Of a DNA stretch of 64,000 nucleotides, positions 30,401 through 53,428 are shown in pieces. Made by a program: the position numbers and the translations under genes. Origin of the DNA: Macrostomum lignano (Eukaryota). The notes below the pieces were generated by a model. It was not told where the DNA came from. It did not search any database and saw only the letters and a list, made by a program, of their open reading frames with translations. How positions within the stretch are numbered: position 1 is the stretch's first letter; the number at the start of each line of letters is the position of its first letter. The DNA lies in contig NIVC01001454.1 of the NCBI GenBank assembly GCA_002269645.1, positions 1-64,000 on the forward strand. Direction: 5' to 3'.

Positions 30401-33400
30401 GTCGGACCTCTATCCTTCAGGTCGGACCTCTATCCTTCAGGTTGGGCCTCTATCCTTCAGGTCGGACATCTATCCTTCAGGTTGGGCCTCTATCCTTCAG
30501 GTCGGACCTCTATCCTTTAGGTTGGGCCTCTATCCTTCAGGTCGGACCTCTATCCTTCAGGTTGGGCCTCTATCCTTCAGGTCGGACCTCTATCCTTTAG
30601 GTTGGGCCTCTATCCTTCAGGTCGGACCTCTATCCTTCAGGTTGGGCCTCTATCCTTCAGGTCGGACCTGTAGCCGTTTTTAGGTTTCACTTTTATCCTT
30701 CAGTTTTAAAAAATAAAAAAATGGAAATTAATTTGTGAAAAATAATAACATCACGCAGCTTTTTGGTTAGCAATGTTTTTCGCCTATTCTAAATTCGATT
30801 CCAAGCAATTGCTAAATTAACGAATACGCTCGTAAATTCGAAGTGATTACAAAAGCGCAATACACGCCAATGCAAACCACCCGCCCAAACAAAACGCAGC
30901 GCTAGCGATCTTCTGGGGCGCATTTATTTCTTCGATCGCCTGTCTGAGAGCGTCCCGCCTATTGCACAACAACCTGTTGAACCGGGTGTTAGCCTGCATG
31001 CTAACATTCTTCGAATCGACCCCGCTGGGCCGCATCGTGAATCGATTTAGCAGCGACGTGAATTGCGTCGATCGCGATTTGGCCGAGAAGTGGCGCACCA
31101 TGCTTCGTATTGCCTTCTGGCTATTGGAGGCTCTTATTGCCGTGTCCTTCGCGTTGCCATGGTTTCTAGTGGCTCTAATTGGCATTGCCGCAATGTTCCA
31201 TGGCGTTCAGGTCTTTATTTATACTTTTAGTTGGTTTTGCGTGGTGTCGTGTTTTTGTCTCTTAACTCTTGTTGTGCACTGGTAATTATGGAAGACAAAA
31301 CGCAAATGCATGCGGGGTACACGCGCACCCCGTTGCTTTCACCAGCTAATTCATATTAAAAATCAATAATTTTGCTTAACCTTGCAATATAAACAATATA
31401 ACCTCTTATGTTGCTTGCCTTAGTTATTGATTGTTGTGGCTTTTTGTGTTTTTAATTTTGTGTATAGTAATGCAATTTTTTTTTGCTTGGTACACAGATT
31501 TTATATTACGAGCGTATTGTTATATACTTTGCCAATGCGTAACCTTTACTCTTCAGTTAGCTTATTTTATGTACTTTATTACACGTACTTTAGTACGCAT
31601 GTACTTTAGTACGCATGTACTTTAGTACGCATGTACTGTAGTACGCATGTACTTTAGTACGCATGTACTTTAGTACGCATGTACTTTAGTACGCATGTAC
31701 TTTAGTACGCATGTACTTTAGTACGCATGTACTTTAGTACGCATGTACTTTAGTACGCATGTACTTTAGTACGCATGTACTTTAGTACGTATGTACTTTA
31801 GTACGCATGTACTTTAAAGTTTGATATTATTTCGTTATTTTCTGAAGTATTTCTCTGGCCTACCTTTCTTCCGCTCCCATCCGACTATCCAGCCATAGCC
31901 GTTCTCATGTCGCAGTTTCTAACAGCCGTCGGCGGCACCCGCGCCTCCGTTGCCCTTTACTGGGGCCTGCTGGCCAACCTACTAAAATCGCCTGTTGTCG
32001 CTCTTGTATCTCCAGACGATGGCAAAGGCGGCGGACGAACTGTTGGCAGCGAATTCTTGCAGCGCTTTGCCGACGATCTGGCCTCGGTTGATGCCGAGAT
32101 GGCGTTGGCCTGCCGATATCTGATTCAGGCCGCCTGCGGACTGCTGGAACGGGCCGCGGTGCTGTGCCAGCTGGATGTCAGCCTGTTGCTGGCTCTGCTG
32201 GCGGGCATTGCTGCCCTGCTGTTTGTACAGGTGGCCGTGTACCCGCACAGCGTTTTTAGTCCTCCGTAGATTTAATTATCTTGTCTTGTCTGGACAATTT
32301 TATTTATTTTACTATGATGATTAACCACTAATTATTGGATTTTCAGCTACTTTTCTGGTACGTTTCAACTTCAACTGTTTTTTGCGCACTGCATCTGCAA
32401 TCAATCTAGCCTTGATTTTATACCAACTTTTTGTGCTCGTATATATTTTGTTTCTGCTAGAACTCACTTCCCCAGTGTTCTGAATTGCCCGCTGACTCAC
32501 TTCCCCAGAATTCTGAATTCCCCGCTGGCTCACTTCCCCAGTGTTCTGAATTCCCCGCTGGCTCACTTCCCCAGTGTTCTGAATTGCCCGCTGGCTCACT
32601 TCCCCAGAATTCTGAATTCCCCGCTGGCTCACTTCCCCAGTGTTCTGAATTGCCCGCTGGCTCACTTCCCCAGAATTCTGAATTCCCCGCTGGCTCACTT
32701 CCCCAGAATTCTGAATTCCCCGCTGACTCACTTCCCCAGAATTCTGAATTGCCCGCTGGCTCACTTCCCCAGAATTCTGAATTCCCCGCTGGCTCACTTC
32801 CCCAGTGTTCTGAATTGCCCGCTGGCTCACTTCCCCAGTGTTCTGAATTGCCCGCTGACTCACTTCCCCAGAATTCTGAATTGCCCGCTGACTCACTTCC
32901 CCAGTGTTCTGAATTGCCCGCTGACTCACTTCCCCAGTGTTCTGAATTCCCCGCTGGCTCACTTCCCCAGTGTTCTGAATTGCCCGCTGACTCACTTCCC
33001 CAGTGTTCTGAATTGCCCGCTGGCTCACTTCCCCAGTGTTCTGAATTGCCCGCTGGCTCACTTCCCCAGAATTCTGAATTCCCCGCTGACTCACTTCCCC
33101 AGAATTCTGAATTCCCCGCTGGCTCACTTCCCCAGTGTTCTGAATTGCCCGCTGACTCACTTCCCCAGTGTTCTGAATTCCCCGCTGGCTCACTTCCCCA
33201 GAATTCTGAATTCCCCGCTGGCTCACTTCCCCAGTGTTCTGAATTCCCCGCTGACTCACTTCCCCAGAATTCTGAATTCCCCGCTGACTCACTTCCCCAG
33301 AATTCTGAATTCCCCGCTGGCTCACTTCCCCAGAATTCTGAATTGCCCGCTGGCTCACTTCCCCAGTGTTCTGAATTGCCCGCTGGCTCACTTCCCCAGT

Positions 33401-36400
33401 GTTCTGAATTCCCCGCTGGCTCACTTCCCCAGTGTTCTGAATTGCCCGCTGGCTCACTTCCCCAGAATTCTGAATTGCCCGCTGGCTCACTTCCCCAGAA
33501 TTCTGAATTGCCCGCTGGCTCACTTCCCCAGAATTCTGAATTCCCCGCTGACTCACTTCCCCAGAATTCTGAATTGCCCGCTGACTCACTTCCCCAGTGT
33601 TCTGAATTACCTGCTGAATTCCTTAGTCTGAACTCTGTACCAGCTCACCAATTTTTCAGCTCCGCTATCTTGTGTTAATTCCGCCGTCTCAATTCCCTAC
33701 ACTTTGTGTTTTAACTAATAATAGATCGAATGATGCTCTTTTGTTGCTAGGCCATGTTCCCATAGCAACTAACTGAAGCTTGCATGTAGTTGGTTAGACC
33801 ACAGCATTGATAAACAGCATCTGCTTCATCTGTCGCTCCCCAATCGCAGAGAATCTTCATCAGCTCATCCCGGCAGCTGAAGCGGCTGGAATCAACGGCC
33901 AAGTCGCCGATTTTCTCCCACTTCTCCGAGACCCTGTCTGGCGTGACCACTATTCGGGCATTCGAACAGCAATCGAATTTCAAACGAATCTGCAACGATC
34001 GCGTTAATTTTTTCAATCGCTGCTATTATCCGAATATTAGTTCGAATAGGTGGCTGGCCGTCCGGTTGGAGCTGGTTGGCAATCTGATTGTCACATTCAC
34101 CTGTCTGTTTGGCGTGCTGGCCAGGGGCACCGTGTCCCCTGGTCTAGTAGGTCTGGCCGCTATCTATGCGCTCAACGTTACCCAGAGCCTGAATTGGCTG
34201 ATCCGAATGACTTCGGAGTTGGAGACTAATATTGTTGCCGTGGAGAGGTGAGAATTCATTTTTATCTTATCCCATTTCAGGGATCTTAAGCTCCCTGAAT
34301 CCCTATGTGCTTAGGATCCTCATGCTTAGAATTTCCAACCTCTAATCCCCATCTTAAGATCTCATGCTTATAACCCGTGTAGAAGTCAGAGCGAGTGAAT
34401 CCTTGGAAGTAGCGAGTACTTAGCGGGAAAACCACCGATGAAATCAACTTTTTTTACACGGTAGCGCGTTTTTGCCAATTTTGTCACTCGCTATCAAAAA
34501 AACGCGCTGGCTCACGGTCAAATACGCGGTGGTTTTCACGGTGAGAGCTCTCTCGCTGCTTGACTCGATGGACAACTCGCTAGCCGCTTCACTCACTCCC
34601 TCATTCTCTCGCTAATTCTCTCGCTACTGTTACTCGCTCATTCTCTCGCTACTGCTACTCGCTCATTCTCTCGCTACTGTTACTCGCTCATTCTCTCGCT
34701 ACTGTTACTCGCTCATTCTCTCGCTTGTAGTCTCGCTAATTCTGTCGGTGTACAAATAATATATTATATATATTATAATAAATATATAATAATTAAAAAT
34801 ATAATAATAATAAAATTAATATTATAATATTAATCTTAATATTATTCATAATATTATATTATTCATAATATTAATATTATTATTAAAAAAATTAATAATA
34901 TTTTTAATTATTATTAATTATTATTATTATATATATATAATATATATTCGAGCAACAAGCTCGAAGACCAGTCGAAGTCAAACGGTAAGTCACGCGGAGG
35001 CCGATCAGTTACTGCGGCCGTTGTCCGCGGCGACGGCAACGTGGGCTAGACGGTCGGTGCCGGTACCAATTTTTCGGCTTCCGTTATATAGAGAAAGAGC
35101 AAGACAGCAATTATAACTCTCTTAAAACAAAAACTTATAACTCTCTACTTTCTAGCTACTTTAGAAGAATGCATAACTGCGTAGTAGTTTTTGGTTTCGG
35201 TAGTTTGCTATAGTTTTAGTTTTCGAGTAAATGTAAAGTAGTTTTTGTTTTTTTGGCCAAAAAAGTTTTGGCAACTGGTCAACTATGAAAAAACAGTAAC
35301 TGCAAAAAACAACTGAAAATGTTACAATCCTTCAATGTAGTCTCCCCCTCTCTCAATGCACTTTTGGTGCCGCCGAATCCATGCTTCGAATGCGCCATGG
35401 TACTCAGAAGCAGGTATGGCCTTCAGTTCTGAATTGATGCACTTAGCCAGGTCCTGGCATCGGTGAAAATTCCGTTCTGCCAGCCGTTCAGTCAGCTTGG
35501 CGAGCACCCAGAAGTCGCAGGGAGCCAAGTCAGGACTGTAGGGTGGGTGGCGGATGGTCTTGATGTTGTTGGCTGCCAGAAAGTTGGTCGTCAGGGCCGC
35601 TGTGTGACTGGACGCATTGTCATGGTGCAGGTGAACTCGCCCAGCTTGAAGCCGTGAGGGCTGAGTTGCGTGAAGTGACGCCATGACTTGTGGCAGAACC
35701 GTACCGGAGTAGAAGCTGGCGTTCACATTCTGTCCATTAGGCACCATGATGACGGCCACGGGCCCAGATGTGCTGATGAAGATGATGAACATCTCCTTCC
35801 GGGACCGAAAGCTGGACCGCAGGACAGTCGGCCTCGCGTCTCCAGAGCCCACCCAGGCCTTGTTCTTCATCTTCTGGGGCACTTGAAAGTAAAAGAACCA
35901 TTTCTCATCACCTGTAACGACGTCGGAAAGCCTCTGGCAGCCTCCTGGACCGAAGTTGCGCAGGAATTCCTGGCTGCACCGCACCCTCTCCCTCTTCTGC
36001 TCTTCTGTCAGGAGGTGGGGCACCCAGCGGGCGGTGACCTTGCGGAGGCCCAGGTGGCTGTGCAGGATGGTGTGCGCACTGCCATCGGAAATACCGACAG
36101 TCTCGCTAATCACAGCGACGGTAATGTTTGGATCCTCGTCCACCAGAGCCCTGACAGCAGCGATGTTGGCTTCGGTCACAGCTGTGCTGGGTCGTCCAGA
36201 CCGGGGGTCGTCGTTCAAGGAGGCCCGTCTGGCGTTGATGGACTCTATCCACCTGGCGACCGTGCGGTAGGAAGGGGCTTGGTCCCCGACTACCTGGACC
36301 AGGTCTGCATGGATTTTGACCGCGCTTTCTCCGAGTCGTGAGCGCATGAAAACGTAGAATCGCCACTGGTCTGGTTGCACTGGCTCCATTTTTGGCAGAG

Positions 36401-38495
36401 TCTAAAACACCACCTTGCGTTGGCCACGCGCAAGTATAACACATTCGAGGGAAAAAAGTCATACTCTATGGTTAAAACCAATGTCTGCGAATTCGTAAAA
36501 AATTTCAACGCTTTGTGATATGTACTTTTGGAGATATTAGGTCAGTTGCCAAAACTTTTTGAATGCCCCTCGTAGTATACGTTCTGGTGCTTTTCTTTAT
36601 CATTTTTTTCGTACAAATCCTTACAAGGCGCCCCATAAATGTCATCTTTATGAATTTACCGTACAAAGCCGTACAAGAAGGCGCCGTATAATGTCATCTT
36701 CATGAATATCAGTACTATTTCCAGCTTTAAGCCATAAATATACTGTACCGTTTGAACCAATTTAATATACACAAGTAATTAAATGGTGTGCATACTTCAT
36801 ATGAAAAATCGAGCGCCGTTTTGAGCGCGAAACTGCGGCATCCGGTGAGCTAAGCCACTGCATTTCTATTGTATAAGCGCGTCAAGTCTAGAGATGGGAA
36901 ATGAGCGAGAGAATGAGCGAGTAACAGTAGCGAGAGAATGAGCGAGTAGCAGTAGCGAGAGAATGAGCGAGTAACAGTAGCGAGAGAATGAGCGAGTAAC
37001 AGTAGCGAGAGAATGAGCGAGTAACAGTAGCGAGAGAATGAGCGAGTAACAGTAGCGAGAGAATGAGCGAGTAACAGTAGCGAGAGAATGAGCGAGTAAC
37101 AGTAGCGAGAGAATGAGCGAGTAACAGTAGCGAGAGAATGAGCGAGTAACAGTAGCGAGAGAATGAGCGAGTAACAGTAGCGAGAGAATGAGCGAGTGCA
37201 GGGACATAAACTCGGTGTATTTGGCACGCTCTTTGAATTTTTTTTGAGCGCGTTAACTCGCTCTAACTTTTACACGGGAACTCCCCATGATTATAATCCC
37301 TAACTTTAGATCCCATTCTTAGAATACCTATCTTTCGATCCCTTGCTTGCTTAGAATCGTCATGCTTATAACCCTTATCTTTAGATCCCCATTTTTATAA
37401 TCCCCATGCTTGGAATCCCCATCTTTATATCCCCATGATTATAATCCCCAGCTTTAGATCCCCATGCTTATTATCCCCATCTTTGGATCCCCTGCTTAGA
37501 ATCCCCATCTTTAGATCCCTTGCTTAGAATCCCCATCTTTAGATTCTATGCTTAGAATCCCCATCTTTATATCTTCATGCTTGAAATCCCTATCTTTAGA
37601 TTCCCTCTCACTCATAAATGCATGCTAGAAGCCCATCTATGTTGTCCCCATAGTGCAACACACAATCCGCCCGCACTGCAGAATCAAGGAGTACTCCGAG
37701 CTGGAGCAGGAGGCCCCTTGGCAACGGCCAGACGAGCCGCCCCTACCAGACGGCTGGCCCCTGGGCGGCGTCAGCTTTCGCAGCTTCGCCTGTCGCTACC
37801 GAGACGACCTGCCGCCGGCCCTGGCCGACATCAACCTGGAGGTCAGCCCCGGCCAGCGGGTCGGCATCGTGGGTCGCACCGGGTCAGGCAAGAGCACCCT
37901 GACCCTGTCGCTGTTCCGTGTGCTGGAGCCCCGGTCCGGCCAGCTGCTGCTAGACGGCGTTGACGTGACCAAACTCGGCCTGCACACGCTGCGGACTAGG
38001 ATCACCCTGATACCGCAGGACCCCCTGCTGTTCGCCGGCAGTCTGCGCTGGAATCTCGATCCGTTCGATCGGCACACTGACGACGAGGTCTGGTCGGCGT
38101 TGGAGACGGCTCACCTGAAGAGCTGGGCCTCCGGCTTGGAGACCGGGCTGAGCCACCCCATCTCGGAGGGCGGAGCGAACCTGTCGCTTGGCCAGCGCCA
38201 GCTGGTCTGTCTAGCGCGAGCTCTGCTTCGCCGCAGCCGCCTGCTCGTACTGGACGAAGCCACCGCTGCCGTTGACGTTGGCACCGACGCTCTGATTCAG
38301 CGCACGATCAGGGAGAAATTCTCTGACGCCACCTTGATCACTGTGGCTCATCGGCTGAATACGGTGATGGACTACGATAAGATTGTTGTACTAGAGCAAG
38401 GTCGCGTGCTCGAGTCCGGCTCGCCTAGCGAACTGTTGGCTAACAAAACGTCCGTGTTCTACGAGATGGCTCTGCAAGCGGGATTGGCTAAGTGA
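14727..38495 (+). CDS. Long-form ABCC/MRP1-like ABC exporter (TMD0-L0-TMD1-NBD1-TMD2-NBD2), about 1655-1664 aa; join(14727..14765,14858..15058,16153..16266,17484..17615,18265..18825,20956..21621,22780..23078,23880..24329,24787..25412,25985..26341,[one of A-D],33850..34247,37682..38495)
   Basis: All listed introns are GT-AG with matching phases. TMD0 motif [13 protein letters not shown] (MRP1 TWNTSNPDFTKCF); L0 [16 protein letters not shown]; NBD1 [26 protein letters not shown]; NBD2 [26 protein letters not shown]. The exon-10 acceptor (25985) is the least certain; an in-phase alternative AG lies about 27 nt upstream. Confidence 0.95.
15165..16025. repeat. 40-bp minisatellite (CTGACTGACTCACTGACCAACTGACAAGTCTAGTTGTAGR)n, ABCC intron 2
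   Basis: Period 40. Confidence 0.95.
16540..17390. repeat. 16-bp C-rich minisatellite (CCCCACACTCCATRTT)n, ABCC intron 3
   Basis: Direct reading; source of many spurious ORFs. Confidence 0.93.
17745..18028. repeat. 14/15-bp tandem repeat (CTGGCAAATGTCTAG / CTGGCAAACGTCGG), ABCC intron 4
   Basis: Direct reading. Confidence 0.9.
18860..20835. repeat. Compound minisatellite (19-bp ACAGGGATAGACAGGTCCA and 23-bp ACAACAGGGATGGACAGTCAGGT units), ABCC intron 5
   Basis: Direct reading; contains an internal duplication of about 550-570 bp. Confidence 0.93.
21645..22600. repeat. (CAGA)n/(CAGAT) microsatellite, ABCC intron 6
   Basis: Direct reading. Confidence 0.96.
23088..23772. repeat. 23-bp minisatellite (GAGATAGTGACTGAGTTAGGGGT)n, ABCC intron 7
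   Basis: Period 23; one TTAGGG per unit. Confidence 0.95.
25432..25917. repeat. About 30-bp G-tract minisatellite (GCCAGAGACTGGGTGTGGCACCG7-10), ABCC intron 9
   Basis: Direct reading. Confidence 0.92.
26378..27500. repeat. (GATA)n microsatellite with higher-order variant blocks, ABCC intron 10
   Basis: Direct reading. Confidence 0.97.
27791..28107 (+). CDS. ABCC alternative exon A (317 nt)
   Basis: aacag|GC ... CAA|gtgagt; encodes (G)[30 protein letters not shown]...[12 protein letters not shown]...YYFIQ. Confidence 0.88.
28620..28800. repeat. 16-bp array (TTTAGTACGTATGTAC)n, intron A-B
   Basis: About 9 near-perfect copies plus degenerate copies upstream. Confidence 0.93.
28933..29258 (+). 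CDS. ABCC alternative exon B (326 nt)
   Basis: ttgcag|CC ... CAG|gtggcc; encodes (A)[30 protein letters not shown]...[12 protein letters not shown]...FCLVQ. Confidence 0.85.
29495..30668. repeat. 20-bp minisatellite (TCTATCCTTCAGGTYGGRCC and variants), intron B-C
   Basis: Period 20; sequence drifts gradually along the array. Confidence 0.95.
30900..31210 (+). CDS. ABCC alternative exon C (311 nt), closest to canonical MRP1
   Basis: acgcag|CG ... CAG|gtcttt; encodes (A)[26 protein letters not shown]...[22 protein letters not shown]...FHGVQ. Confidence 0.92.
31585..31815. repeat. 16-bp array (TTTAGTACGCATGTAC)n, intron C-D
   Basis: About 14 copies; unit differs by one base from the A-B array. 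Confidence 0.94.
31893..32230 (+). CDS. ABCC alternative exon D (338 nt)
   Basis: atccag|CC ... CAG|gtggcc; encodes (A)[26 protein letters not shown]...[12 protein letters not shown]...LLFVQ. Confidence 0.83.
32461..33612. repeat. 33-bp minisatellite (CCCGCTGRCTCACTTCCCCAGWRTTCTGAATTS)n, intron after exon D
   Basis: Period 33; explains the 11-aa-repeat ORFs on both strands. Confidence 0.95.
35260..36572 (-). mobile_element. Mariner (Tc1/mariner, DD34D) element; right TIR complete, left TIR truncated
   Basis: Right end CAGTTGCCAAAACTTTTTGAATGCCCCTCG followed by TA at 36573-36574. Only the inner 18 bp (AAAAAGTTTTGGCAACTG, 35260-35277) recur inverted at the left. Confidence 0.88.
35322..36389 (-). 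CDS. Intact mariner transposase, 355 aa
   Basis: N-terminal HTH with PRSGRP, WVPHLL linker, TGDEKW, HHDNA and YSPDLAPCD; 34 residues between the second and third catalytic Asp. Confidence 0.96.
   Translation of the reverse strand: MEPVQPDQWRFYVFMRSRLGESAVKIHADLVQVVGDQAPSYRTVARWIESINARRASLNDDPRSGRPSTAVTEANIAAVRALVDEDPNITVAVISETVGISDGSAHTILHSHLGLRKVTARWVPHLLTEEQKRERVRCSQEFLRNFGPGGCQRLSDVVTGDEKWFFYFQVPQKMKNKAWVGSGDARPTVLRSSFRSRKEMFIIFISTSGPVAVIMVPNGQNVNASFYSGTVLPQVMASLHATQPSRLQAGRVHLHHDNASSHTAALTTNFLAANNIKTIRHPPYSPDLAPCDFWVLAKLTERLAERNFHRCQDLAKCINSELKAIPASEYHGAFEAWIRRHQKCIERGGDYIEGL
37283..37600. repeat. Degenerate about 14-bp repeat (CCCCATCTTTAGAT-like), also present left of the TIR element (about 34270-34373)
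   Basis: Same motif on both sides of 34374-37278, so it is the likely insertion target. Confidence 0.7.
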
Positions 38496-39813
38496 TTGTT
38501 TGCATGTAATCCTGACTGTATTACCTGGGAAATGTACTTTTCGAGCTTTTGGGTCGACATGTACTTTTAATATAAATTGACTATATTTACAAAGTGCATC
38601 GTGTACTGTTAGTAGTAAATTACTTATTAGTGAGAATTTTATACAACTAAATCAGTATGTACTTTATGCACTAAGAGTTTGAATTGTAAAGTACACATGT
38701 ACTATTAAATATCGTTACCGTGATAAGAATCGCTAGAGAGTCATTGCAAACAGCTCAATAGGGACTCTAGCGACTGTTGAGTCACGAGGGCATCACGTGA
38801 GCTGCAGAATCGTAAAAGTCAGCCAAGAGCCGTTGTGCTGGCGCTTAACTTCCTACTAACTCAAGTAGACTAAACAGAGCTGTGATAAATGTGAAATGCG
38901 ATTCAAATTCATAAAGTGTTAACAAATATTTGTGTATTAGGTGTTGTTATGCTGTAGTTATATTTTGAATTGTTCAACAACTCTCAAAGCTTGTAGCAAT
39001 CTCGTTCAATTTTGCTTTCAAATAGTACGACTGAGGGACTATGTGGCCATGTGATTCAAAACTCTAAGGATTTGCAGTGAAATGCTGCTACCTACAAGCA
39101 CTAGTTAATTTTTTTGTTAAAACATGCTTTCAACTCCCTTAGTAGTTGTTGTTTTTTTCTCCACAATTTTTTATCCCGTGCAATTTCGATTCTACTAACA
39201 ATTTTGAGAGTGCAATTTCTCAACTGTTTTAACTGCTTCTAATTGCTTAGTTATCATAGTCTGTCATTTTTATGTTGTTCCCTCCCTATACTGGTTTACT
39301 ATTAAAATCCCACACTTTCTACTGGTTCGTTTTGTCTAATAGTAGTAGACGCAGGTGTTTTTTAGTTTATTTTTACTGCCCTGCCTTTAATTATTCAGTT
39401 GTATTTTGGGATCATACACTCGCTTTAACTACTTAGTAACATAGTAGCTTGAGCGAACATTATGCAATAAATAGATAAAAATCGGTCAAAAAAATTTTAC
39501 TCAAGTAAACAGTGTGCTACTTTGCCCATAAAAGTCGAAGGAAACATAAATAAAAGATACAAAAAAAAGTATTCTGGTTCTTTGTTAGTAAAAAGTTGCA
39601 AAAACAGAAACCCGTCACGTTTCTACTTATTAATTTTATTTATTTGCTGGTGTTTTTTAAAACGAGTTTTTTGAATTTATGGTTATTACTAATTGGCTCA
39701 TCTCTTAGGTAGGTGGCTGTACTCTAGTCATCACATATTACTAAAACTCGATTTTTTGAAATTGTTCAACAACTGTAATCAATCTGACGCACTGCGTGTA
39801 ACCTAAAATATAA

Positions 39814-40091
39814 TCAGTCAGTTTTGCCGGAGCCGCCGGTGAAAAAGTACTCAACTATGTCGTCGGGATGGAAGCCTTCGAAGCACAGATTCTTGACGAT
39901 GAAACGGGCGCAGACCTGCCGTTATCGGAGATTAATTGATCATAAATAGTCTTTACTATATTTACTATAGTAAATATAGAAAAAATGAGCTATGTCTAGT
40001 TAGTAGATTTTATTATATCGTATGTAAAGCTGTAAAACTCTATTTATCTATCTGCATCTACGTACATGTCTATCTATCTATCTCACCTGTA

Positions 40092-40132
<41 letters not shown>

Positions 40133-40140
40133 CACCTGTA

Positions 40141-40177
<37 letters not shown>

Positions 40178-40185
40178 CACCTGTA

Positions 40186-40226
<41 letters not shown>

Positions 40227-40263
40227 CACCTGTATATCTATCTATCTATCTATCTCACCTGTA

Positions 40264-40300
<37 letters not shown>

Positions 40301-40308
40301 CACCTGTA

Positions 40309-40349
<41 letters not shown>

Positions 40350-40403
40350 CACCTGTATATCTATCTATCTCACCTGTATATCTATCTATCTATCTCACCT
40401 GTA

Positions 40404-40440
<37 letters not shown>

Positions 40441-40448
40441 CACCTGTA

Positions 40449-40485
<37 letters not shown>

Positions 40486-40576
40486 CACCTGTATATCTAT
40501 CTATCTATCTATCTCACCTGTATATCTATCTATCTATCTATCTCACCTGTATATCTATCTATCTATCTCACCTGTA

Positions 40577-40613
<37 letters not shown>

Positions 40614-40679
40614 CACCTGTATATCTATCTATCTATCTATCTATCTCACCTGTATATCTATCTATCTATCTCACCTGTA

Positions 40680-40712
<33 letters not shown>

Positions 40713-40720
40713 CACCTGTA

Positions 40721-40777
<57 letters not shown>

Positions 40778-40822
40778 CACCTGTATATCTATCTATCTAT
40801 CTATCTATCTATCTCACCTGTA

Positions 40823-40859
<37 letters not shown>

Positions 40860-40929
40860 CACCTGTATATCTATCTATCTATCTATCTATCTATCTCACC
40901 TGTATATCTATCTATCTATCTCACCTGTA

Positions 40930-40966
<37 letters not shown>

Positions 40967-40974
40967 CACCTGTA

Positions 40975-41027
<53 letters not shown>

Positions 41028-42914
41028 CACCTGTATATCTATCTATCTATCTATCTATCTGTGTATCTATCTAATCTATCTACCTGCAGCTGTCGACAGC
41101 TCCCCGCTCATTCACTTACCTGAGTGGCATAGATTTGATGTCGTGATTTTAGCGATCTTCGTCGCTGATCGATCACGTTAGAGCGCTGCGAGATCGTCTC
41201 GTCGTAGGCGCTCAGTATGGGTGACCGACGCTCCGGGACCGACATAAAGCCCAGCGACATCACGTAGCGAAGGAAGCTGCTCTGCATGTGACTGCTTAGC
41301 AGGGAGGCGAATTCGCAGCGTCGTTGCCTGCCTGCAGATGGGTGGAATCGAACATGCACAGATGCACTCCTGCCTCACCCACCTCACTCCTCTGCCTCAC
41401 CCACCCACCACACCCTCTGTCTCACACACCCCACCCCCTGCCTCACCCACCTCACTCCCCTGCCTCACCCACCCACCACACCCTCTGTCTCACACACCCC
41501 ACCCCTGCCTCACCCACCTCCCTCCCCTGTCTCACCCACCTCACTTCCCTGCCTCAACCACCCCACACCCTCTGTCTCACACACCCCACCCCCTGCCTCA
41601 CCCACCTCACTCCCCTGCCTCACCCACCCACCACACCCTCTGTCTCACACACCCCACCCCCTGCCTCACCCACCTCCCTCCCCTGCCTCACCCACCTCAC
41701 TCCCCTGCCTCAACCACCCCACTCCCCTGCCTCACCCACCCCACCCCCTGCCTCACCCACCTCACTCTCCTGTCTCACCCACCCCACTCCCCTGCCTCAC
41801 CCACCCCACCCCCTGCCTCACCCACCCCACCCCCTGCCTCACCCACCGGCCACCCCAACCCCTGCCTCACCCACCTCACTCCCCTGCCTCACCCACCCAC
41901 CACACCCTCTGTCTCACACACCCCACCCCTGCCTCACCCACCTCCCTCCCCTGTCTCACCCACCTCACTCCCCTGCCTCAACCACCCCACTCCCATGCCT
42001 CACCCACCCCACCCCCTGCCTCACCCACCTCACTCTCCTGTCTCACCCACCCCACTCCCCTGCCTCACCCACCCCACCCCCTGCCTCACCCACCCCACCC
42101 CCTGCCTCACCCACCCCACCCCCTGCCTCACCCACCGGCCACCCCAACCCCTGCCTTACCCACCCTACATCCCCTGCCTCACCCACCCCACTCCCCTGCC
42201 TCACCCACCCTACATCCCCTGCCTCACCCACCCCACCCCCTGCCTCACCCACCGGCCACCCCACTCCCCTGCCTCACCCACCCCACCCCCTGCCTCGGCT
42301 CACCCACCAGATAAGTAGGCGATTTGGCTGTCCATCTCGTGGTACATGAGGCGAAAGATGACGTGAAAAATGGGCTCGACCTGGCCGTCAACTAAGTCCT
42401 GCTTGATGCCCAGTCGCTTGTACACCAGGCCAACCAGGGGTACGTTTACAACGTTGACCGCATTGCACATGAAGTACAGGCTCCACTGCATGCACAACAG
42501 GTAGGACAGACACACCTGTGATTGTTTAGAGACAGGTGTTTTGTTAATCACTCGCGACTGTATGACTTTAATTAATTAATGCAATGATGTCGTTAATTAT
42601 TGCTAGTAAATTATGCATGAAACTTGCGTGAAAAGCTGAGCTGTGCTCCTGCATGTTGATCAGGCTGAGAAAGGCTGGTAATGACCTCGTGTGAATTAGC
42701 AGCTGCAGAAACATCATATTGCTGTGCATTTTGAAGCCGAGGCGCTTCACTGCGGTGCGGTGATTTGAGTTATTAATTAGTTTATTGATTGATTGATTGA
42801 ATAATTGATTATTCATCGTTTGACTGATTCATTGATTTATTAATACATTGATTGATTGATTGATCGTATTATTGATTAATTTATTGATTGATTGTTATTT
42901 GATAATTTATCATT

Positions 42915-42954
<40 letters not shown>

Positions 42955-44836
42955 AAATTGATAAATTGATTGATGATTCATGATTTGATTGAGTAATTAA
43001 TTGCTTGACCGATTGATGATGGATTGATTGATTGATTGATGAATTAATTAATTGATTGATTTTATTGATTGATTTATTGATTGATTGATATTTGATAAAT
43101 TATCATTCCATTGATTGATTGATAGATAAATTGAATGATTGATTGATAGATTGATTGATTGATTGATAAATTGATTGATTGATTGATAAATTGATTGATT
43201 GATTGATTATTCATCATTTGCTTGAGTAATTAAATGCTTGACGGATTGATGGATTGATTGATGGATTGATTGATTAATTGATTAATTGATTGATGAATTA
43301 ACTAATTGATTCATTCATTCATGATTTGTGATTTGACTAATTGGTGATTGATGATTCATCATTTGATTGATTGATTGACCAGTCTCACCCAGGAAGTAGG
43401 CCACCATAGTGCTTAAAATCCTGGACAGAATGCTAACCGCAAGGAACAGGAGCACCAGCTTCCAGGACACGTATTTCCACAGGAAGCGATTCTCCACCGA
43501 TCCGAACACGAACCCGATAGACAGCGAGCCGAAAAAGCCAAGCAACTTTGACGTTTTGGCCAGCATTGATTTGTAGGAGATCTTGCTGGCCTCCGACATG
43601 TTGTGAATGCAGAATGTGCTCTGAATGAGCTCGCAGGATATGCTTCTGCCGCGAGGGGGGTGGAGGCAGCTGCGAGTCAGGCTCTGTGCTCGTTCCTCTC
43701 ATACACTTCTCTCACTCTCTCCGTCTCACTCTCTCCCTGTCTCCCTGTCTCCCTGTCTTCCTGTCTCCCTGTCTCACTCTCTCTCTGTCTCACTCTCTCC
43801 CTGTCTCACTCTCTCTCTGTCACACTCGCTCTCTGTCTCACTTTCTCCCTGTCTCACTCTCTCTCTCTGTCACACTCGCTCTCTGTCTCATTGTCTCACT
43901 CTCTCCCTCTCTCATTGTCTCACTCTCTCCCTGTCTCACTCTCTCCCTGTCTCACTCTCTCCCTGTCTCACTCTCTCCCTGTCTCACTCTCTCCCTGTCT
44001 CACTCTCTCCCTGTCTCACTCTCTCCCTGTCTCACTCTCTCCCTGTCTCACTCTCTCCCTGTCTCACTCTCTCCCTGTCTCACTCTCTCCCTGTCTCACT
44101 CTCTCCCTGTCTCACTCTCTCCCTGTCTCACTCTCTCCCTGTCTAACTCTCTCCCTGTCTCACTCTCTCTCTCTCTGTCACACTCGCTCTCTGTCTCACT
44201 CTCTCCCTGTCTCACTCTCTCCCTGTCTCACTCTCTTCCTGTCTCACTCTCTCCCTGTCTCACTCTCTCCCTGTCTCACTCTCCATTTTTCACAACCGAT
44301 GAGCAACGCAGGCACTCACGCAATGATAGGTGACAATCCCATTTTCTGAGCGACAGTGTACGATATGTAGTTGGAGCATGGCAGCACAACCATTTCTTGC
44401 TGCACGTGAAGAAAGCTGGAGTGCTTGGTCACGTAGCTGCTTAACAAGCCAGCCGTCAGGCCCAGCATCACGGAAACCATTGGAACAAACAGAGCTCGTT
44501 TTAGTACGGCAACGGATGTGCTGCCAATGCTCAGATTGGTGTCGTTGCTCAGGTCTACCGCTATTTGTCTGCGATTGTGGGGGCGCGATTGGCTTATTTT
44601 TATCTATTAGATCTGCTGGATGTTCTCCGAGCCGCCATTAGAACCGATCTTTTGTCACTCTTTCTCTCACTCTCTTCCTCGCTCACTCTCTTCCTCTTCC
44701 TCTCACTCTCTCTCACTCTCTTCCTCTCTCACTCTCTCCCTCTTCCTCTCACTCTCTCTTTCACTCCCTCCCTCTCTCACTCTCTCACTCTTTCCCTCTC
44801 TCTCTCTCACTCCCTCCCTCTCTCCCTCTCACTCTT

Positions 44837-44900
<64 letters not shown>

Positions 44901-44917
44901 CTCACTCTCTCACTCTT

Positions 44918-44993
<76 letters not shown>

Positions 44994-47615
44994 ACTCTCT
45001 TCCTCTCTCACTCTCTTCCTCTTCCTCTCACTCTCTATCACTCTCTCTCTTTCACTCCCTCCCTCTCTCACTCTCTCACTCTCTCACTCTCTCTCTCACT
45101 CTCTCCCTCTCTCTCTCTCTCTCTCTCACTCTCTCACTCTCTTCCTCTTCCTCTCACTCTCTATCACTCTCTCTCTCTTTCACTCTCTCCCTCTCTCACT
45201 CTCTCACTCTCTCTCTCTCTCACACTCTCTCCCTCTCTCTCTCTCTCTCTCTTTCACTCTCTTCCTCTCTCACTCTCTTCCTCTTCCTCTCACTCTCTAT
45301 CACTCTCTCTCTCTCTTTCACTCCCTCCCTCTCTCACTCTCTTCCTCTTCCTCTCACTCTCTCACTCTCTCACCTCTCCCTCTCACTCTCTCACTCCCTC
45401 CCTCTCTCACTCTCTCACTCTTTCCCTCTCTCTCTCTCTCTCACTCTCTCACTCTCTCACTCTCTCACCTCTCCCTCTCACTCTTTCACTCTCTCACTCT
45501 TTCCCTCTCTCTCTCACTCTCTCACTCTCTCACTCTCTCACCTCTCCCTCTCACTCTTTCACTCTCTCACTCCCTCCCTCTCTCACTCTCTCACCTCTCC
45601 CTCTCAGTCTTTCACTCCCTCCCTCTCTCGCTCTCTCACTTTCTCCTTCTCCCTCTCCCTCTCCCTCTCAGAAGAGAGGAGATACGAAAGAAGAGAGCTG
45701 AGAAGAGACTCAAGCTTTTTTAGCTGTTGTGAAGTTTTTATGGACCCCAGGGCCGGTTAGAGCGGCTTCTGCCAGCCTCTGGTCCAAAATCAATTTGGCT
45801 GTTTACTCCTATCTCTGTCTCCCTTCGCTGCCTTCTGATTGGCTCTTCAGTCTCGCCTCGCCTTCTTATCAGCATCCAGCTGGCCCCACCCAGTTGATGC
45901 TAAAAATAGAATACGAGCTCAGTGTTACTTGTCCTGTTCTTCTGTACATGACTCAATACTTGTAGCAATTTTTGGCGGTCACCTGAGCTCCAAAGCGTAG
46001 GACATTGACACGAGACCGTAACTGGACAAAAACCCTCTCATCTGACAATTGCCTCGAATCTCGGGGAAGTTATGAACGCACAAGTACGAGTCGACCATGG
46101 CCAAAGAGGAGCCAATATACAGCGCGTACATCACTTGGTGAAAATCGAACTTGGTACTTTTCGTAGATAAGTAACCATTAGATTGGGTGACGACGTAAGC
46201 TGTTAAAGCGTAACGATAAGGTCGTGGAAATAGTCTATGCGATTTCTAGTAAATAAAGCTGAAATTACCCGCAAAGAGGGGCTTTGAGAGGACTACCTTG
46301 TATTTTATATAGCTTTGTGAGCCAGCCATTCACCTGTACGAGTGACCTTGAGCTTTGGGAGCCAGCCTCCTGTGACCTTCAGCTTTGAAAACTTCTACGT
46401 GTGGCCTTGAGTTTCGAGAATCTCTGTGTGACCTTGAGCTTCGAGAATCTCTACGTGTGACCTTGAGCTTCGAGAATCTCTACGTGTGACCTTGAGCTTC
46501 GAGAATCTCTACGTGTGGCCTGGAGTTTCGATAATCTTTACGTATGACCTTGAGCTTCGAAAATCTCTACGTGTGACCTTGAGCTTCGAGAATCTCTACG
46601 TATGACCTTGAGCTTCGAGAATCTCTACGTGTGGCCTGGAGTTTCGATAATCTTTACGTATGACCTTGAGCTTCGAAAATCTCTACGTGTGACCTTGAGC
46701 TTTGAGAATCTCTACGTATGACCTTGAGCTTCGAGAATCTCTACGTGTGACCTTGAGCTTCGAGAATCTCTACGTGTGGCCTGGAGTTTCGATAATCTTT
46801 ACGTATGACCTTGAGCTTCAAAAATCTCTACGTGTGACCTTGAGCTTTGAGAATCTCTACGTATGACCTTGAGCTTCGAGAATCTCTACGTGTGGTCTGG
46901 AGTTTCGAGAATCTCTACGTGTGACCTTGAGCTTCGAGAATCTCTACGTGTGACCTTGAGCTTCGAGAATCTCTACGTGTGATCTTGAGCTTCAAGAATC
47001 TCTACGTGTGACCTTGAGCTTCGAGAATCTCTACGTGTGACCTTGAGCTTCGAGAATCTCTACGTGTGATCTTGAGCTTCAAGAATCTCTACGTGTGATC
47101 TTGAGCTACAAGAATCTCTACTCGAGACCTTTACCTCATAGTTACATAAGACATTGTTAAAATTTGCGACAAGTAACGATCAGAGACTTAATTAGTTATG
47201 CGAGCAACTCACCTAGAACAGATCCAACAATGAGCAAAACGCACAGCGCAGTCTTGAGTATGGCAAAGGTGATGGTCATTCGCAACTGTTTCCTTGTAGA
47301 CTGCACGCACAACTTACTGGCCGGGTACATGATGAGAAACGGCAGTATATTGTTGTCGAAATTGTTCCACGGCAGAAAGAACTGCGCCAAACTCTTCAAT
47401 GATCGGCTGGTGCCAAAGAGCAGGCCGAAGGTCATTCCAATCAAGGAATTGCAGACTGTCTCGTTAAAGAAGACGTACAAACGATTGTTGATGATGCTCA
47501 TGTAGACTATGCCCCATACAAGGAATAGGAATATTACTACTATAGTTGTCTGTATGTCTTCATGATGTGTGAACATGAACGCATAGGACTTGGAGTGATG
47601 CTCAGTCTCACCCAT
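39814..47615 (-). CDS. Divergent SLC9/NHE (CPA1)-fold membrane protein, about 589 aa; complement join(47615..47213,46199..45983,44568..44320,43645..43389,42749..42628,42515..42308,41331..41120,39915..39814)
   Basis: All junctions phase-compatible, one being GC-AG. Gap-free visual alignment to human NHE1 segments: [19 protein letters not shown] (LFGSIISAVDPV..FEEIHIN); [22 protein letters not shown] (AFTSRFT..AYLSAELFHLSGIMA); [12 protein letters not shown] (ANISHKSHTTIK); LSRIL (IARVL); HTRSLPAF (GLRGAIAF); [13 protein letters not shown] (LDHLLTGIEDICG). Confidence 0.85.
40045..41082. repeat. (CTAT)n microsatellite interrupted about 25 times by CTCACCTGTATA, last NHE-like intron
   Basis: Direct reading. 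Confidence 0.96.
41365..42300. repeat. C-rich minisatellite (CCCTGCCTCACCCACC core), NHE-like intron
   Basis: Direct reading. Confidence 0.93.
42770..43380. repeat. Degenerate (ATTG)n microsatellite, NHE-like intron
   Basis: Direct reading. Confidence 0.9.
43705..44283. repeat. 16-bp CT-rich repeat (CTCTCTCCCTGTCTCA)n, NHE-like intron
   Basis: Direct reading. Confidence 0.94.
44655..45670. repeat. (CT)n-rich low-complexity tract, NHE-like intron
   Basis: Direct reading. Confidence 0.95.
46340..47122. repeat. 29-bp minisatellite (GTGTGACCTTGAGCTTCGAGAATCTCTAC)n, NHE-like intron
   Basis: Period 29. Confidence 0.94.
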
Positions 47616-49252: not shown

Positions 49253-52200
49253 ATGCAGCAGCGACCCAATGGGGCCAACCATCTGTCTGTCGCCACTGTG
49301 CCAGAGACGTTCCGCAGGTCGGTCAGATCCAACGCCAGTATCCAGGCCCCGGCGTCAGAGGCTGTAGCGGCTTCCGCTGTCTCGCCAGCGACTGCCAACA
49401 AGCCGAAGTCTTCCAAGGTGGTCCGCATCAACTCTATAGAAAATCCGTTTACTCAGCTGCGCGATCGGCAGGCTCACGATCGAGCGGAGAGCGCGGCAGG
49501 TCGCAGCTCCGAGCATCGGTCGGCATCCTTTGATCAGCTGGCCCTGCTGTACGCCATGGGCCTCACCCTGTTTGGCTTTGTCTTTCCGCTATCAAACTAT
49601 GTCAGCTTGGAGCCCTTCTCAGCTTGGTACCTGGCAGGCTTCTACATCATCTTGTACCTGGTTTCTATCGCCTTTCTCGTCTTCTTTCTTGCCTGGGTAT
49701 TGAGACGACCGCCGCATATTTTGTTCCTATCGGACTCGGAGAGACGGCGCTACCAGCAAGAGCTTGATCAGAATCAGCAGCATCACAATCATCATCGACC
49801 GGGTCCGGTGACTTTTCACGTCGGGATGAATGGGTCTATGGACTCCGACGAAGAGGTCTGTGATCTGATCTGCTCGTAGATTGGTATTAGAACTCGAAGT
49901 CGCAGTTCTGTGGTTACTTAGTTTGTGCTGGGAACTCATGGAGTCGTAGCCCTGTGGTTACTTAGTTTGTGCTGGGAACTCATGGAGTCGTAGCCCTGTG
50001 GTTACTTAGTTTGTGCTGGGAACTCATGGAGTCGTAGCCCTGTGGTTACTTAGTTTGTGCTGGGAACTCATGGAGTCGTAGCCCTGTGGTTACTTAGTTT
50101 GTGCTGGGAACTCATGGAGTCGTAGCCCTGTGGTTACTTACGCACGTAGTCTACGCTAGCAATTCATATTCCTAGTGTGCTTCATACGACGTATATAAAA
50201 TTTTAGGTGTCTTAATATGAGCCACGTCTCCTAAGTAGCTAGTGCCCAGATTCTGAATTCAAAATGTAAAATCTAATTTCATTTTCAGGACAGCGGAAAT
50301 GACAACAAAGCGTTTGAAGCTAACAAGGAGGTAATGAATTTCATTAAGCACTTTTACTCCGGAGTTTATTCGAATCCGGGTTTAATATTATTAACTGTAA
50401 TAAGTCATCGCTTCATCACTCCTAATTAAAATATCCCCCGATTCTAGACCACAAAGGAGTCGACCGCTGCATCATATCTGCCCCCAGCCCCAGTTTCCGG
50501 TGTGGCCTGCATCGAACTGCACGAACCAGGAGCCAGTGAGAGTCCGGAACTGCCTGACAGGTGAAATAATTAAGGCTCATTTTCACGTATATCAGTGAGC
50601 AGAGTTGATTGCCCTCAGAGATTTTAGTTGGCTTAGTGGTACATTTTTTGTAATTGTTATGTCCTGCTTCTTAAGGATAAATCCTTGATGATAGATGCTC
50701 TCATCTGTACTCATCTGATAAGAATCTGTACGCTTGACATCCCAGAATCGCATGATATCCAACTCGGTAATTTGTCAAAGAAGTTTTATTCCTAAACTCT
50801 CTGTTGATAGCTTTCTGTTTTTCTCTTCAAAGCTAGTTCCAAAGCGTGAAGGAATGTAGATTAGGTACATTTTCCGGTATATTTGATCGAGATTAAAGTC
50901 CCTATCTACCAGTCTATCGAAAAAATCCTATTTCCTAGAATCGACTCCATCAGCAACGGCTCGTCCAACCGCAGCAGCACTGTCTTTGACCAGCAGACAA
51001 CGGTGAATTCGGCGTATTCGGACGCAACAACCGCATTCTCGGTCGCTACGGCAGCCGCCGCCGCTCGCCGTCGGCGAAACGGCGCTGCCGGCGGCGCTGG
51101 CCACGGCGGCGGCAGTAGGCGTCGTATGGGCGATCGGATCAACTCGACGCTGCTGCAGAACGCCCGGGAATTTGGCGTCCAAGAGATCCCAGCTTGTTCA
51201 GTGCTGTCGCTGCAGGAGTCGCACTCGCCCTCGTTCTTCCTCCGGGTTGCCTGCTTCATCTTCGGCGCCTTGAAGATGACACACGAGACCCTGATGATTG
51301 TAGACTGCATGGCGGATATCACTGGCCACTGCGCCTACAAGAAGGTCAGCGATTCCGTTGCCAAGGTGCTTCAGTACACGCTCAGCATCATTTTCACCGT
51401 GTTGCAGACCTTCTTTCTCTTTAAATACAGCAAAGTTTCAGTGAACATCTACAGAAATGTAAGTTTACTTAGTGCAGTTTTCTTAGAACAACCTTTCATC
51501 TCTGATTCGTATAAATTTGCTAGAAAAAAACGAATTTCAAACTCCGCCACACACAGCTCTCTGTGCTGGGCTTCATGCACCTGTTAGCTACCAACATGTG
51601 CGTTTGGTTCCAAGCGATCCTGCTGGAAACGAGTCATAGTACAAATAATCATTCGGGTGGCAGCGACCACGGCGACGGAGACCACGGCAGTAGCAGTTAC
51701 AGCAGCAATGATACATACTCGAATGCCAGCACAACTGCACACAGTGTTGGAAGCTCTTGCTCAAAAGACGTCTTCTGGAGGATGGCGCCCTACCTGTTTC
51801 CATTCACTATCGAGTACGCGCTGATGGCGGCGTTCACCTGTTTCACTCTGTATCGAAACGTTAGCAAATTTCTGGACGTCATTCAGTCCAAAGGCTTCAA
51901 CGTGGCCAAGAAGTGTCTGAGAAATCGCAAACGTTCGCAGACTAGCTTCTCCGCCAGCTGCTACAAAACTGACAAAGGCTTCTTCCTTGGCGCTTTTCTG
52001 CTCATTCTGGGCATCGTGTCCGGGATCTACTTCACCGTGTACGTCAACGACAAGCCAGACGATGCCGTTACAAGCCAATTAATCTATCAGATCACAGACC
52101 TGGTACTGCTGACAGTTAATCTAGTGCTGTGCGCCATTGCGAATGCCAAAATGCGCAAGTTGACTCTGCTACAACGGGCTGGCACGGGACCAGACTCCTG

Positions 52201-53428
52201 GCTGCTCGGCATCACCCTCATCGGAGTGCTGGCCTATCAGATGTTTCAATTGTTTGGCGCGTCCGCTGAGCAAGGCGTTTTTATGGCACTGCGAATCATC
52301 GAGGGCCTGCTCTCGATTGGGCAGAGCGTTTTCCAGGTGAGAGTCAGATAAAAAATGAATACTATATATGTCAGTTAGTAGCACTATGCTACTTATAGCT
52401 ATTAGGGCTTCAGGCACTGCCGAAATTCAATTGGCGACAGTTGATGCCCTTTTACTTGTGAATCCCTGGGCTGGCACACACTCACACAGGGTGTTACAGC
52501 GGCCTTGTTCTCATTGAGCATTTCTCGTTCGGCAGTGTACTCAGTCTCTTGGTTGGGACACAGTCTCTTGGTTAGAGACGCTGTCTCATGGTTGTGGGCG
52601 CTGTATCTTGGTTGGGGACGCTGTATCTTGGTTGGGGACGCTGTATCTTGGTTGGGGACGCTGTATCTTGGTTGGGGACGCTGTATCTTGGTTGGGGACG
52701 CTGTATCTTGGTTGGGGACGCTGTATCTTGGTTGGGGACGCTGTATCTTGGTTGGGGACGCTGTATCTTGGTTGGGGACGCTGTATCTTGGTTGGGGACG
52801 CTGTATCTTGGTTGGGGACGCTGTATCTTGGTTGGGGACGCTGTATCTTGGTTGGGGACGCTGTATCTTGGTTGGGGACGCTGTATCTTTTTTTTGGGCG
52901 CTGTATCAAAAATGTCCTGTTGCTGACGCTGTCCCAACATGCCCCATCAATAAAAATCCTGGCTACGCTCCTGCTAGCACCGCGACCGCAAATCTCACTA
53001 ATAATGCGCTCACTGCAATCCTTCTACGCTCATAGGTCTACCTGGTTCTCGACGGTGAAAAGCGTCGCTCTAAAAGTGACGAAGTCATCGAGGAGAAGCC
53101 CGGCCGAGAGATGATTGCCGCCTTACTGCTGGGCAACATCGCCCAGTGGATTGTGTACACGTTGGAGATACGCGAGATCAACAATCTGCCAAACTACAGT
53201 CACGCCTACGTACCAGTCGCGTCGAACATCTTTGCCTACGTGTGCTCGCCGCTGATCATCTTCTTCCGGTTCCATTCGGCCTGCTGTTTCGTGGAAATTT
53301 GGCGAACAGCTTACAAAGGAAGAAAGCGTCGATGTCAGAGTCATCCGGACCTGACCGTGTGCTCAACTGTTCCAGGCAGTGTGAGCGCTCTGCAGGATTC
53401 TTCGACTAAGTCGAACAGTCAGGCTTGA
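49253..53428 (+). CDS. Otopetrin-family proton channel, about 816 aa; join(49253..49855,50289..50330,50448..50560,50939..51458,51557..52336,53036..53428)
   Basis: Family motifs LLYAMGLTLFGFVFPL, GFYIILYLVS, SFFLRVACFIFG, LQTFFLF, GFMHLLATNMCVW, PYLFPFTIEY, KPGREMIAALLLGNIAQW and FFRFHS; all junctions GT-AG and phase-compatible. Confidence 0.93.
49908..50140. repeat. 44-bp tandem repeat, about 5 copies, otopetrin intron 1
   Basis: Period 44 (49921 and 49965); head-to-tail with no spacers. Confidence 0.95.
52595..52890. repeat. 20-bp minisatellite (CTGTATCTTGGTTGGGGACG)n, otopetrin intron 5
   Basis: Period 20, near-perfect copies. Confidence 0.96.

Follow-up and report, generated by a model that had tools for sequence, protein, structure and literature searches.

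Can a protein that appears to have kept the fold of a Na+/H+ exchanger (NHE) and lost the residues that bind the ion still be an exchanger, and if it is not, for what role would it be maintained? The question is raised by a gene on the minus strand, 47615-39814, of a 64,000-nucleotide stretch of Macrostomum lignano DNA (contig NIVC01001454.1 of assembly GCA_002269645.1, positions 1 to 64,000; hereafter the window). An earlier reading of the window, the original prediction below, described a complete, stop-free model of eight exons encoding such a protein. We rebuilt the gene from the raw sequence by six-frame reading and splice-site inspection and arrived at the same model, with eight exons, 1770 nt, 589 codons and a sole, terminal stop. 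The product, referred to here as the flatworm protein, is identical, letter for letter, to GenBank PAA67789.1 ('hypothetical protein BOX15_Mlig008458g2', Macrostomum lignano). We propose, putting the chance at about even, that this NHE-fold protein is maintained as a non-exchanger and works by way of its scaffold or its short helical tail.

A divergent homologue of plasma-membrane exchangers

Searches with the protein itself find no exchanger. The Pfam Na_H_Exchanger profile (PF00999), whose use had been proposed with the original prediction, leaves the 589-residue protein undetected at E <= 1 and even at E <= 10. Likewise, a PDB sequence search returned no NHE, and a word-indexed protein search retrieved the query alone. 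UniRef names one copy, 99.7% identical, 'Na_H_Exchanger domain-containing protein'. Because the Pfam and PDB searches found no NHE, the case for homology is made by an exhaustive phmmer search and by profiles. Against 1.84 billion cluster representatives phmmer gave 46 matches at E <= 1e-3, and PF00999 was found in all 40 of the matches scanned. Leaving aside a fragment of this gene, the top match (P0006) has a library-wide E of 1.5e-11 at 24% identity; it belongs to the cephalopod NHE1/'NHE-beta-like' group and is 63% identical to Octopus sinensis NHE1. BLASTP of the flatworm protein against P0006 gives 1e-18 across 328 residues, and the nearest sequences are mollusc NHE1/beta-like proteins. 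A profile of 40 phmmer matches, whose members were chosen by similarity to the query, scores the flatworm protein at 137 bits. A second, independent profile, built from 24 NHEs of molluscs, brachiopods, annelids and arthropods that were picked as relatives of P0006, scores it at 40 bits (E 7.5e-15, single comparison), and hhalign against canonical NHEs returns a probability of 97.7% with an E of 1.8e-12.

Identity is low throughout, about 19-25% to plasma-membrane-type NHEs and only 15-21% to individual NHEs in MAFFT alignments. The alignment is nevertheless collinear across all 13 transmembrane (TM) helices, with essentially one length difference of 4-5 residues. The claim that the core segment aligns to NHE1 without gaps holds for about residues 154-350 and fails outside that stretch. 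Together these sequence comparisons establish that the flatworm protein is an NHE homologue. It would descend from a Na+/H+ exchanger of the plasma-membrane type (SLC9A, CPA1), be highly divergent from it and be restricted to one lineage.

Loss of the canonical ion-binding site

We assigned roles to residues, in human NHE1 numbering, from the NHE1-CHP1 structure (PMC8190280), the SLC9C1 structure (PMC10620092) and a study of the CPA motif (PMC6181914). The segment VFGESLLNDAV, which carries the ND motif, is replaced by the 11 residues 192-202, beginning with L192 (45997-46029, minus strand). NHE profile alignments bear out the original reading of this counterpart, with E262 changed to Tyr, N266 to Ser and D267 to Met. 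D267, the 'strictly conserved' ion and proton ligand, is M200 in every alignment (codon 46005-46003), and N266, the Asn of the ND motif, is S199. The ion ligand S263 is G196, and E262, the buried TM6 Glu that forms a salt bridge to R425, is Y195 (a gap in hhalign).

The damage reaches well beyond this segment. D172 and E391, both acidic funnel residues, are Y97 and G326; the latter position falls on K323 in one alternative local alignment and is never acidic. E346, the Glu of the outward site, is Q281, so that the changes of E346 to Gln and of E391 to Gly read earlier both stand on the NHE alignments. F162, the Phe of the outward site, is D87, and P168, second in the pair of prolines by which the TM3 bulge is stabilised, is F93. 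Three of the five acidic residues lining the NHE1 cytoplasmic funnel are lost; E131, another funnel residue, is kept as E52. Also kept are the residues that neutralise the half-helix dipoles, D238 of unwound TM5 (as D171) and R458 of unwound TM12 (as R397). The equivalents of D238, R425 and R458 had all been thought to remain, and the claim holds for the two dipole residues. It does not hold for R425, the salt-bridge partner of E262, whose counterpart depends on the alignment: the gapless HMMER path gives V360, while BLASTP and hhalign reach R365 by way of a 5-residue insertion, and the local profile scores for the two placements are close (18.6 vs 20.5).

The CPA motif tells the same story. 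Its positions 1-4, in unwound TM5, read MVDS in the flatworm protein as against AVDP in human NHE1, and the clade motif is PTDP (PMC6181914). Positions 5-8, E-N-D-R, read Y-S-M-(R or V). The position 7 Asp that carries the ion and proton (motif per PMC6181914) is Met200 in all alignments, and the position 6 Asn of electroneutral exchangers is Ser199. The CPA1 marker, a Glu at position 5 salt-bridged to an Arg at position 8, is replaced by Tyr195 or a gap and by V360 or R365. The Asp of unwound TM5 and the Arg of unwound TM12, as in CPA1/NHE proteins, are present as D171 and R397 (roles per PMC10620092). The alignments thus confirm an ion-site loss wider than the substitutions first noted. D267 and S263 are called key for Na+/H+ binding in the NHE1 structure paper, and D267N by itself abolishes NHE1 activity (PMC8190280). 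Since the Asp, the co-ligand Ser and the supporting Glu are all missing here, canonical Na+/H+ exchange by the flatworm protein is, to judge from its residues, very unlikely.

Could an incorrect gene model or a faulty assembly instead have made the motif seem missing in what is an ordinary exchanger? The exon that carries the motif, exon 2, gives some room for this, scoring only 3.6 bits against NHE profiles when taken alone; for that reason its assignment rests on collinearity with exons 1, 3 and 4, which are significant. However, the lost residues are spread over four exons (1, 2, 3 and 4), so one wrong exon would not suffice, and the 589-residue product was annotated from transcripts in three separate contigs. 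The annotation of the Mlig_3_7 assembly draws only on RNA-seq, namely StringTie/TACO transcripts, a de novo transcriptome, and poly(A) and trans-splicing data (PMC5730564); the exon structure is therefore transcript-supported, including its one unusual junction. This is intron 5 (42516-42627, 112 nt), which is GC-AG with a consensus donor, gcaagt, where the other six of the seven introns are GT-AG. We accept it because the reading frame requires it, and its length is constant at the homeologous loci L001 and L002.

An alternative exon containing GESLLND, named beforehand as the finding that should overturn the prediction, did not appear. A six-frame scan of the whole 64-kb window with an NHE hidden Markov model (HMM) matched only exons 3, 4 and 1, with exon 2 at its 3.6 bits and the rest noise; no other NHE-like open segment lies in any frame of the window. 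The introns leave little unique sequence in which an exon could hide, because tandem arrays fill six of them: introns 1-4, 6 and 7 (40069-47121) are each nearly wholly a different array, of TCTA (45-bp higher-order unit), a C-rich 22-mer, ATTG, the 16-mer TCTCACTCTCTCCCTG, a CT-rich repeat and a 29-mer. Intron lengths also vary widely among three copies of the gene; intron 7, for example, measures 1204, 371 and 578 nt. The artefact explanation is already largely refuted, and we give it next to no chance.

Predicted fold and uneven erosion of the two domains

Structure prediction against NHE1 had been suggested along with the original prediction. AlphaFold2 run with an NHE alignment gave a model (mean predicted local distance difference test, pLDDT, 76; predicted template modelling score, pTM, 0.73) that resembles human NHE1 best, the input alignment being itself made of NHEs. 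Human NHE1 and NHE3 rank first in a Foldseek search with this model, and the target-normalised TM-scores to NHE1 are 0.85-0.86. The helices break at residues 168-171 and 395-398, which coincide with the unwinding of TM5 and TM12 in NHEs. A single-sequence run, made as a control for circularity, reached a pLDDT of 38 and is uninformative. The model suggests, by a partly circular route, a 13-TM NhaA-type fold with crossing, unwound TM5 and TM12.

Transport by NHEs follows an elevator mechanism, and the proteins are obligate dimers. In NHE1 the dimerisation domain comprises TM1-3 and TM7-10, and the core, or transport, domain TM4-6 and TM11-13 (PMC8190280). We compared the two domains using an independently chosen set of NHEs, as homologues picked by similarity to the query bias the outcome. 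To this set the flatworm protein is 17.8% identical over the core and 23.5% over the dimerisation domain, whereas canonical NHEs compared with one another show 60% and 57%. Where canonical NHEs are at least 90% conserved, the flatworm protein retains the residue at 11 of 67 core positions, as against 22 of 47 dimerisation-domain positions (Fisher p 0.0007). Relative to the canonical norm, erosion is greatest in TM6 and TM12 and least in TM7-9. Since the core is the conserved part in working NHEs, the inversion fits a relaxed or redirected constraint on transport with a continuing constraint on the scaffold.

A rival reading is a remodelled transporter, one that keeps the elevator fold and moves a different substrate or uses a relocated carboxylate, its site lined by M200, Y195, S199, Y97, D87, D171, E52 and Q281. 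The hallmarks of the fold are retained (TM5 and TM12, broken in the model, D171, R397), as are the acidic E52 and D171, and a new acidic residue, D87, stands at the position of F162, which lines the outward-facing cation and inhibitor site of NHE1 (PMC8190280). Loss of the motif Asp has precedent too: position 7 is Asp in 94% of CPAs and about 6% lack it (PMC6181914), and an environmental family with an invariant Gly-Tyr for ND, described below, is well conserved. The purifying selection reported in the next section would fit transport equally. A working elevator core, however, should stay conserved, and here its signature residues survive at only those 11 of 67 positions, erosion has gone furthest in TM6 and TM12, the helices central to the mechanism, and both partners that shape the site are altered (E262 to Tyr, S263 to Gly). 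We consider a remodelled transporter possible, though on the unlikely side.

Gene copies, selection and expression

Three copies encoding 589 residues lie on separate contigs, the other two differing from PAA67789.1 at one and two residues. All eight exons are open in all three. Across the copies we count 8 synonymous single-base codon changes and 3 non-synonymous ones (S8L, L134I and G586T), the latter all outside the conserved helices. These numbers are small because the copies derive from recent polyploidisation. The ratio of non-synonymous to synonymous change (pN/pS) is 0.08 and 0.18 in the two pairs with enough synonymous change, with binomial p of 0.0005-0.003 under neutrality. Divergence between copies is 0.2-0.5% in the coding sequence and 1-3.5% in four 200-nt flanks upstream and downstream of the gene. 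We took these gene flanks as the reference, as ungapped comparison of intron flanks is confounded by indels of repeat length. The suggestion that the gene is 'apparently maintained intact' is thus upheld by three open copies of three and by 8 synonymous against 3 non-synonymous changes. An unexpressed gene with a dN/dS near 1, named beforehand as speaking against it, is not what we see, with pN/pS at 0.08-0.18 and the gene present in a transcript-based annotation.

Might the gene nonetheless be a duplicate on its way to being lost, weakly transcribed, its function gone or going, and intact in appearance only because the polyploid copies are young? The extreme divergence, which puts the protein beyond Pfam, and the lack of an orthologue in protein searches agree with this, as does the gene's absence from searchable expression tables. 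Copies only 0.2-0.5% apart make intactness across them weak evidence. In addition, an older-assembly peptide (P0004, UniRef A0A1I8G9J3) is frameshifted at a T5 homopolymer, at about 46030-46040, just before the degenerate motif. We read this frameshift as a sequencing error, because it lies in a homopolymer of an older assembly; an indel of sequencing or assembly is more probable than a real allele. Against drift, the synonymous excess is significant, and erosion is domain-specific and not uniform. Moreover, a protein of some 20% identity that still has 13 collinear hydrophobic helices, about one 4-5-residue indel and an open frame of 589 codons over eight exons points to long-term constraint. 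Drift to loss appears improbable to us.

Proposed role of the protein

The reading we prefer, that of a maintained non-exchanging protein, can be set out as follows. The 13-helix NhaA-type architecture would have been retained and the canonical cation/proton site lost, the protein being kept for a role that needs the fold and not the transport site. The likeliest such role would be protein-protein contact, in which the TM7-10 scaffold forms homo- or heterodimers or partners bind to the short helical tail. A non-exchange role of a similar sort has been discussed for mammalian SLC9C1. The original prediction had offered a pseudo-exchanger, a scaffold, a sensor or a transporter of altered chemistry; an NHE homologue without the key residues is what we find, and the data do not separate the four options.

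Several observations weigh against the preferred reading. The estimate of selection draws on only 11 codon changes, and the polyploid copies compared are very recent. Word-indexed and phmmer searches of a 15-billion-protein collection found no orthologue from another species. The Logan part of that collection holds no transcript-derived copy, and the identifiers Mlig008458 and Mlig009223 are absent from the searchable supplementary tables of three M. lignano papers, so that expression is perhaps low. The fold model depends on an alignment made of NHEs, its single-sequence control reaching only a pLDDT of 38. Retention is unremarkable in TM1 and TM10, the helices of the dimer interface, so that kept dimerisation is something we infer. 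Finally, E52, D171 and the new D87 still face the presumed funnel, where a relocated cation site is possible.

A more specific proposal takes the flatworm protein as a dead protomer or auxiliary subunit that pairs through TM7-10 with canonical NHEs or another membrane partner and tunes their activity or trafficking, or else lets D87 and the Met/Tyr pocket carry a non-canonical substrate. We hold this to be unlikely. As a dead protomer it would be, to our knowledge, the first pseudo-exchanger regulator among NHEs.

Gene structure and neighbouring genes

All exons are on the minus strand. Exon 1 (47213-47615; ATG at 47615) encodes residues 1-134 with TM1-TM4 and scores 29 bits against the NHE HMM. 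It holds the retained E52 (E131 equivalent), D87 in place of F162, P92-F93, where PP has become PF, and Y97 in place of D172. Residues 135-207, with TM5-TM6, the D171 codon (46092-46090; D238 equivalent, kept) and the degenerate ND segment, come from exon 2 (45983-46199). Exon 3 (44320-44568; residues 207-290, TM7-TM9) is the best-conserved part, with 53 bits and E 2e-15 against the HMM, and carries Q281 for E346. Exon 4 (43389-43645; residues 290-376, TM9-TM11) scores 35 bits and carries G326 for E391 and V360 or R365 at the R425 position. Exon 5 (42628-42749; residues 376-416) encodes TM12 with its unwound stretch and R397, the retained R458 equivalent, and is followed by the GC-AG intron. 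TM13 and a juxtamembrane helix are encoded by exon 6 (42308-42515; residues 417-486), cytoplasmic helices that the model places with low confidence by exon 7 (41120-41331; residues 486-556), and residues 557-589 by exon 8 (39814-39915), which ends in the TGA stop at 39816-39814. Two overlapping matches to the AATAAA polyadenylation signal (39635-39644, minus strand) lie 170-174 nt 3' of the stop and are consensus matches alone.

A 263-residue product of the same gene (P0005, UniRef A0A1I8IR32) bears the UniRef name 'RGS domain-containing protein'. Its internal skip inside exon 3, the one checked, has no canonical GT donor. We rejected the RGS-like tail that the name implies: it has no Pfam match at E <= 10 and no PDB match, and BLASTP against an RGS4 domain gave an E of 0.79.

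An otopetrin (proton channel) gene lies at 50883-52351 on the plus strand, about 3.3 kb upstream of the NHE-like gene and divergent from it; upstream of the L002 copy, too, an otopetrin gene is called (L002 230-2652). That two proton-handling families adjoin may be coincidence. On the other side, a large ABCC-type ABC transporter gene (about 18250-38495, plus strand; ABC_membrane at 20878-21648, ABC_tran at 37653-38495) is convergent with the NHE-like gene, about 1.3 kb from its 3' end, an arrangement common to L001 and L002. Apparently within an intron of the ABC gene lies an intact open reading frame (ORF) of 355 residues (35322-36389, minus strand) with DDE_3 and HTH (Mos1-like) domains, a Tc1/mariner-type transposase. 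An uninterrupted ORF of 748 residues (3702-5948, plus strand) carries an MFS_1 domain (E 1e-39); such an intronless transporter gene is unusual near intron-rich neighbours. A further ORF of 422 residues (32321-33589, minus strand), with Curlin_rpt and Apolipoprotein matches, is most likely a translated low-complexity repeat and not a gene.

Comparison with known systems

With SLC9A1-5 and the invertebrate 'NHE beta-like' proteins (CPA1, PF00999) the flatworm protein shares 13 collinear TM helices and a predicted fold closest to human NHE1 and NHE3. It keeps the TM5 Asp and the TM12 Arg of plasma-membrane NHEs, the TKHSS stretch of TM7, the NxS-K stretch before TM10 and the PLV that ends TM13. 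It differs from them in reading Y, S and M at motif positions 5-7, in the altered equivalents of S263, D172, E346, E391, F162 and P168, and in a tail of only about 139 residues, which lacks the long regulatory C-terminus.

The closest precedent in concept is mammalian SLC9C1, the sperm NHE, in which ND is replaced by TS; its authors see in this a clue that the protein took on another function. Sperm function depends on the mouse protein even though it displays no exchange activity when expressed heterologously (PMC6052114). Like SLC9C1, the flatworm protein is predicted to be an NHE fold with ND replaced. Unlike it, SLC9C1 has voltage-sensor and cyclic-nucleotide-binding domains, and the flatworm protein is closer to SLC9A-type NHEs, with a far more eroded core.

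Another ND-less lineage, apparently maintained, is the environmental 'GY' family (alignment A3), about 20 PF00999 proteins from metatranscriptome contigs (P0043, P0036 and P0178-P0196). Its members carry an invariant Gly-Tyr for ND and usually Ala for E262, keep D238, R425, R458 and E391, and are 44-81% identical to the reference P0043. They resemble the flatworm protein as PF00999 homologues that have lost ND, with Tyr at the D172 position and the TM5 Asp and TM12 Arg kept. In contrast to it, they still match Pfam and keep the R425 and E391 equivalents. That the flatworm protein belongs to this family we rejected, hhalign giving an E of 3e-9 against 1.8e-12 for canonical NHEs. A separate protein, P0013, reads NG at the ND position.

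GenBank already lists the gene's product as a hypothetical protein; a literature search found no paper mentioning it. NHE folds without ND are likewise precedented, by SLC9C1, by the 6% of CPAs noted above and by the environmental GY family. The flatworm protein is, in its aligned residues, more extreme than these, with the whole core signature eroded. Its value is limited by those precedents and by an apparent restriction to one lineage. It is a candidate pseudo-transporter, as mammalian SLC9C1 may also be, and a natural protein that keeps the scaffold without the ion site could reveal which parts of the fold matter beyond transport. Macrostomum lignano is a standard stem-cell and regeneration model. 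The idea is thus testable in the animal itself, transgenesis having also been published (PMC5730564).

Outside the NHEs, the same concept, in which a transporter fold is kept, transport is lost and the protein is put to use in signalling or regulation, is represented by yeast Snf3/Rgt2 and Ssy1. These are non-transporting homologues of transporters that serve as sensors, on MFS and APC folds unrelated to that of NHEs.

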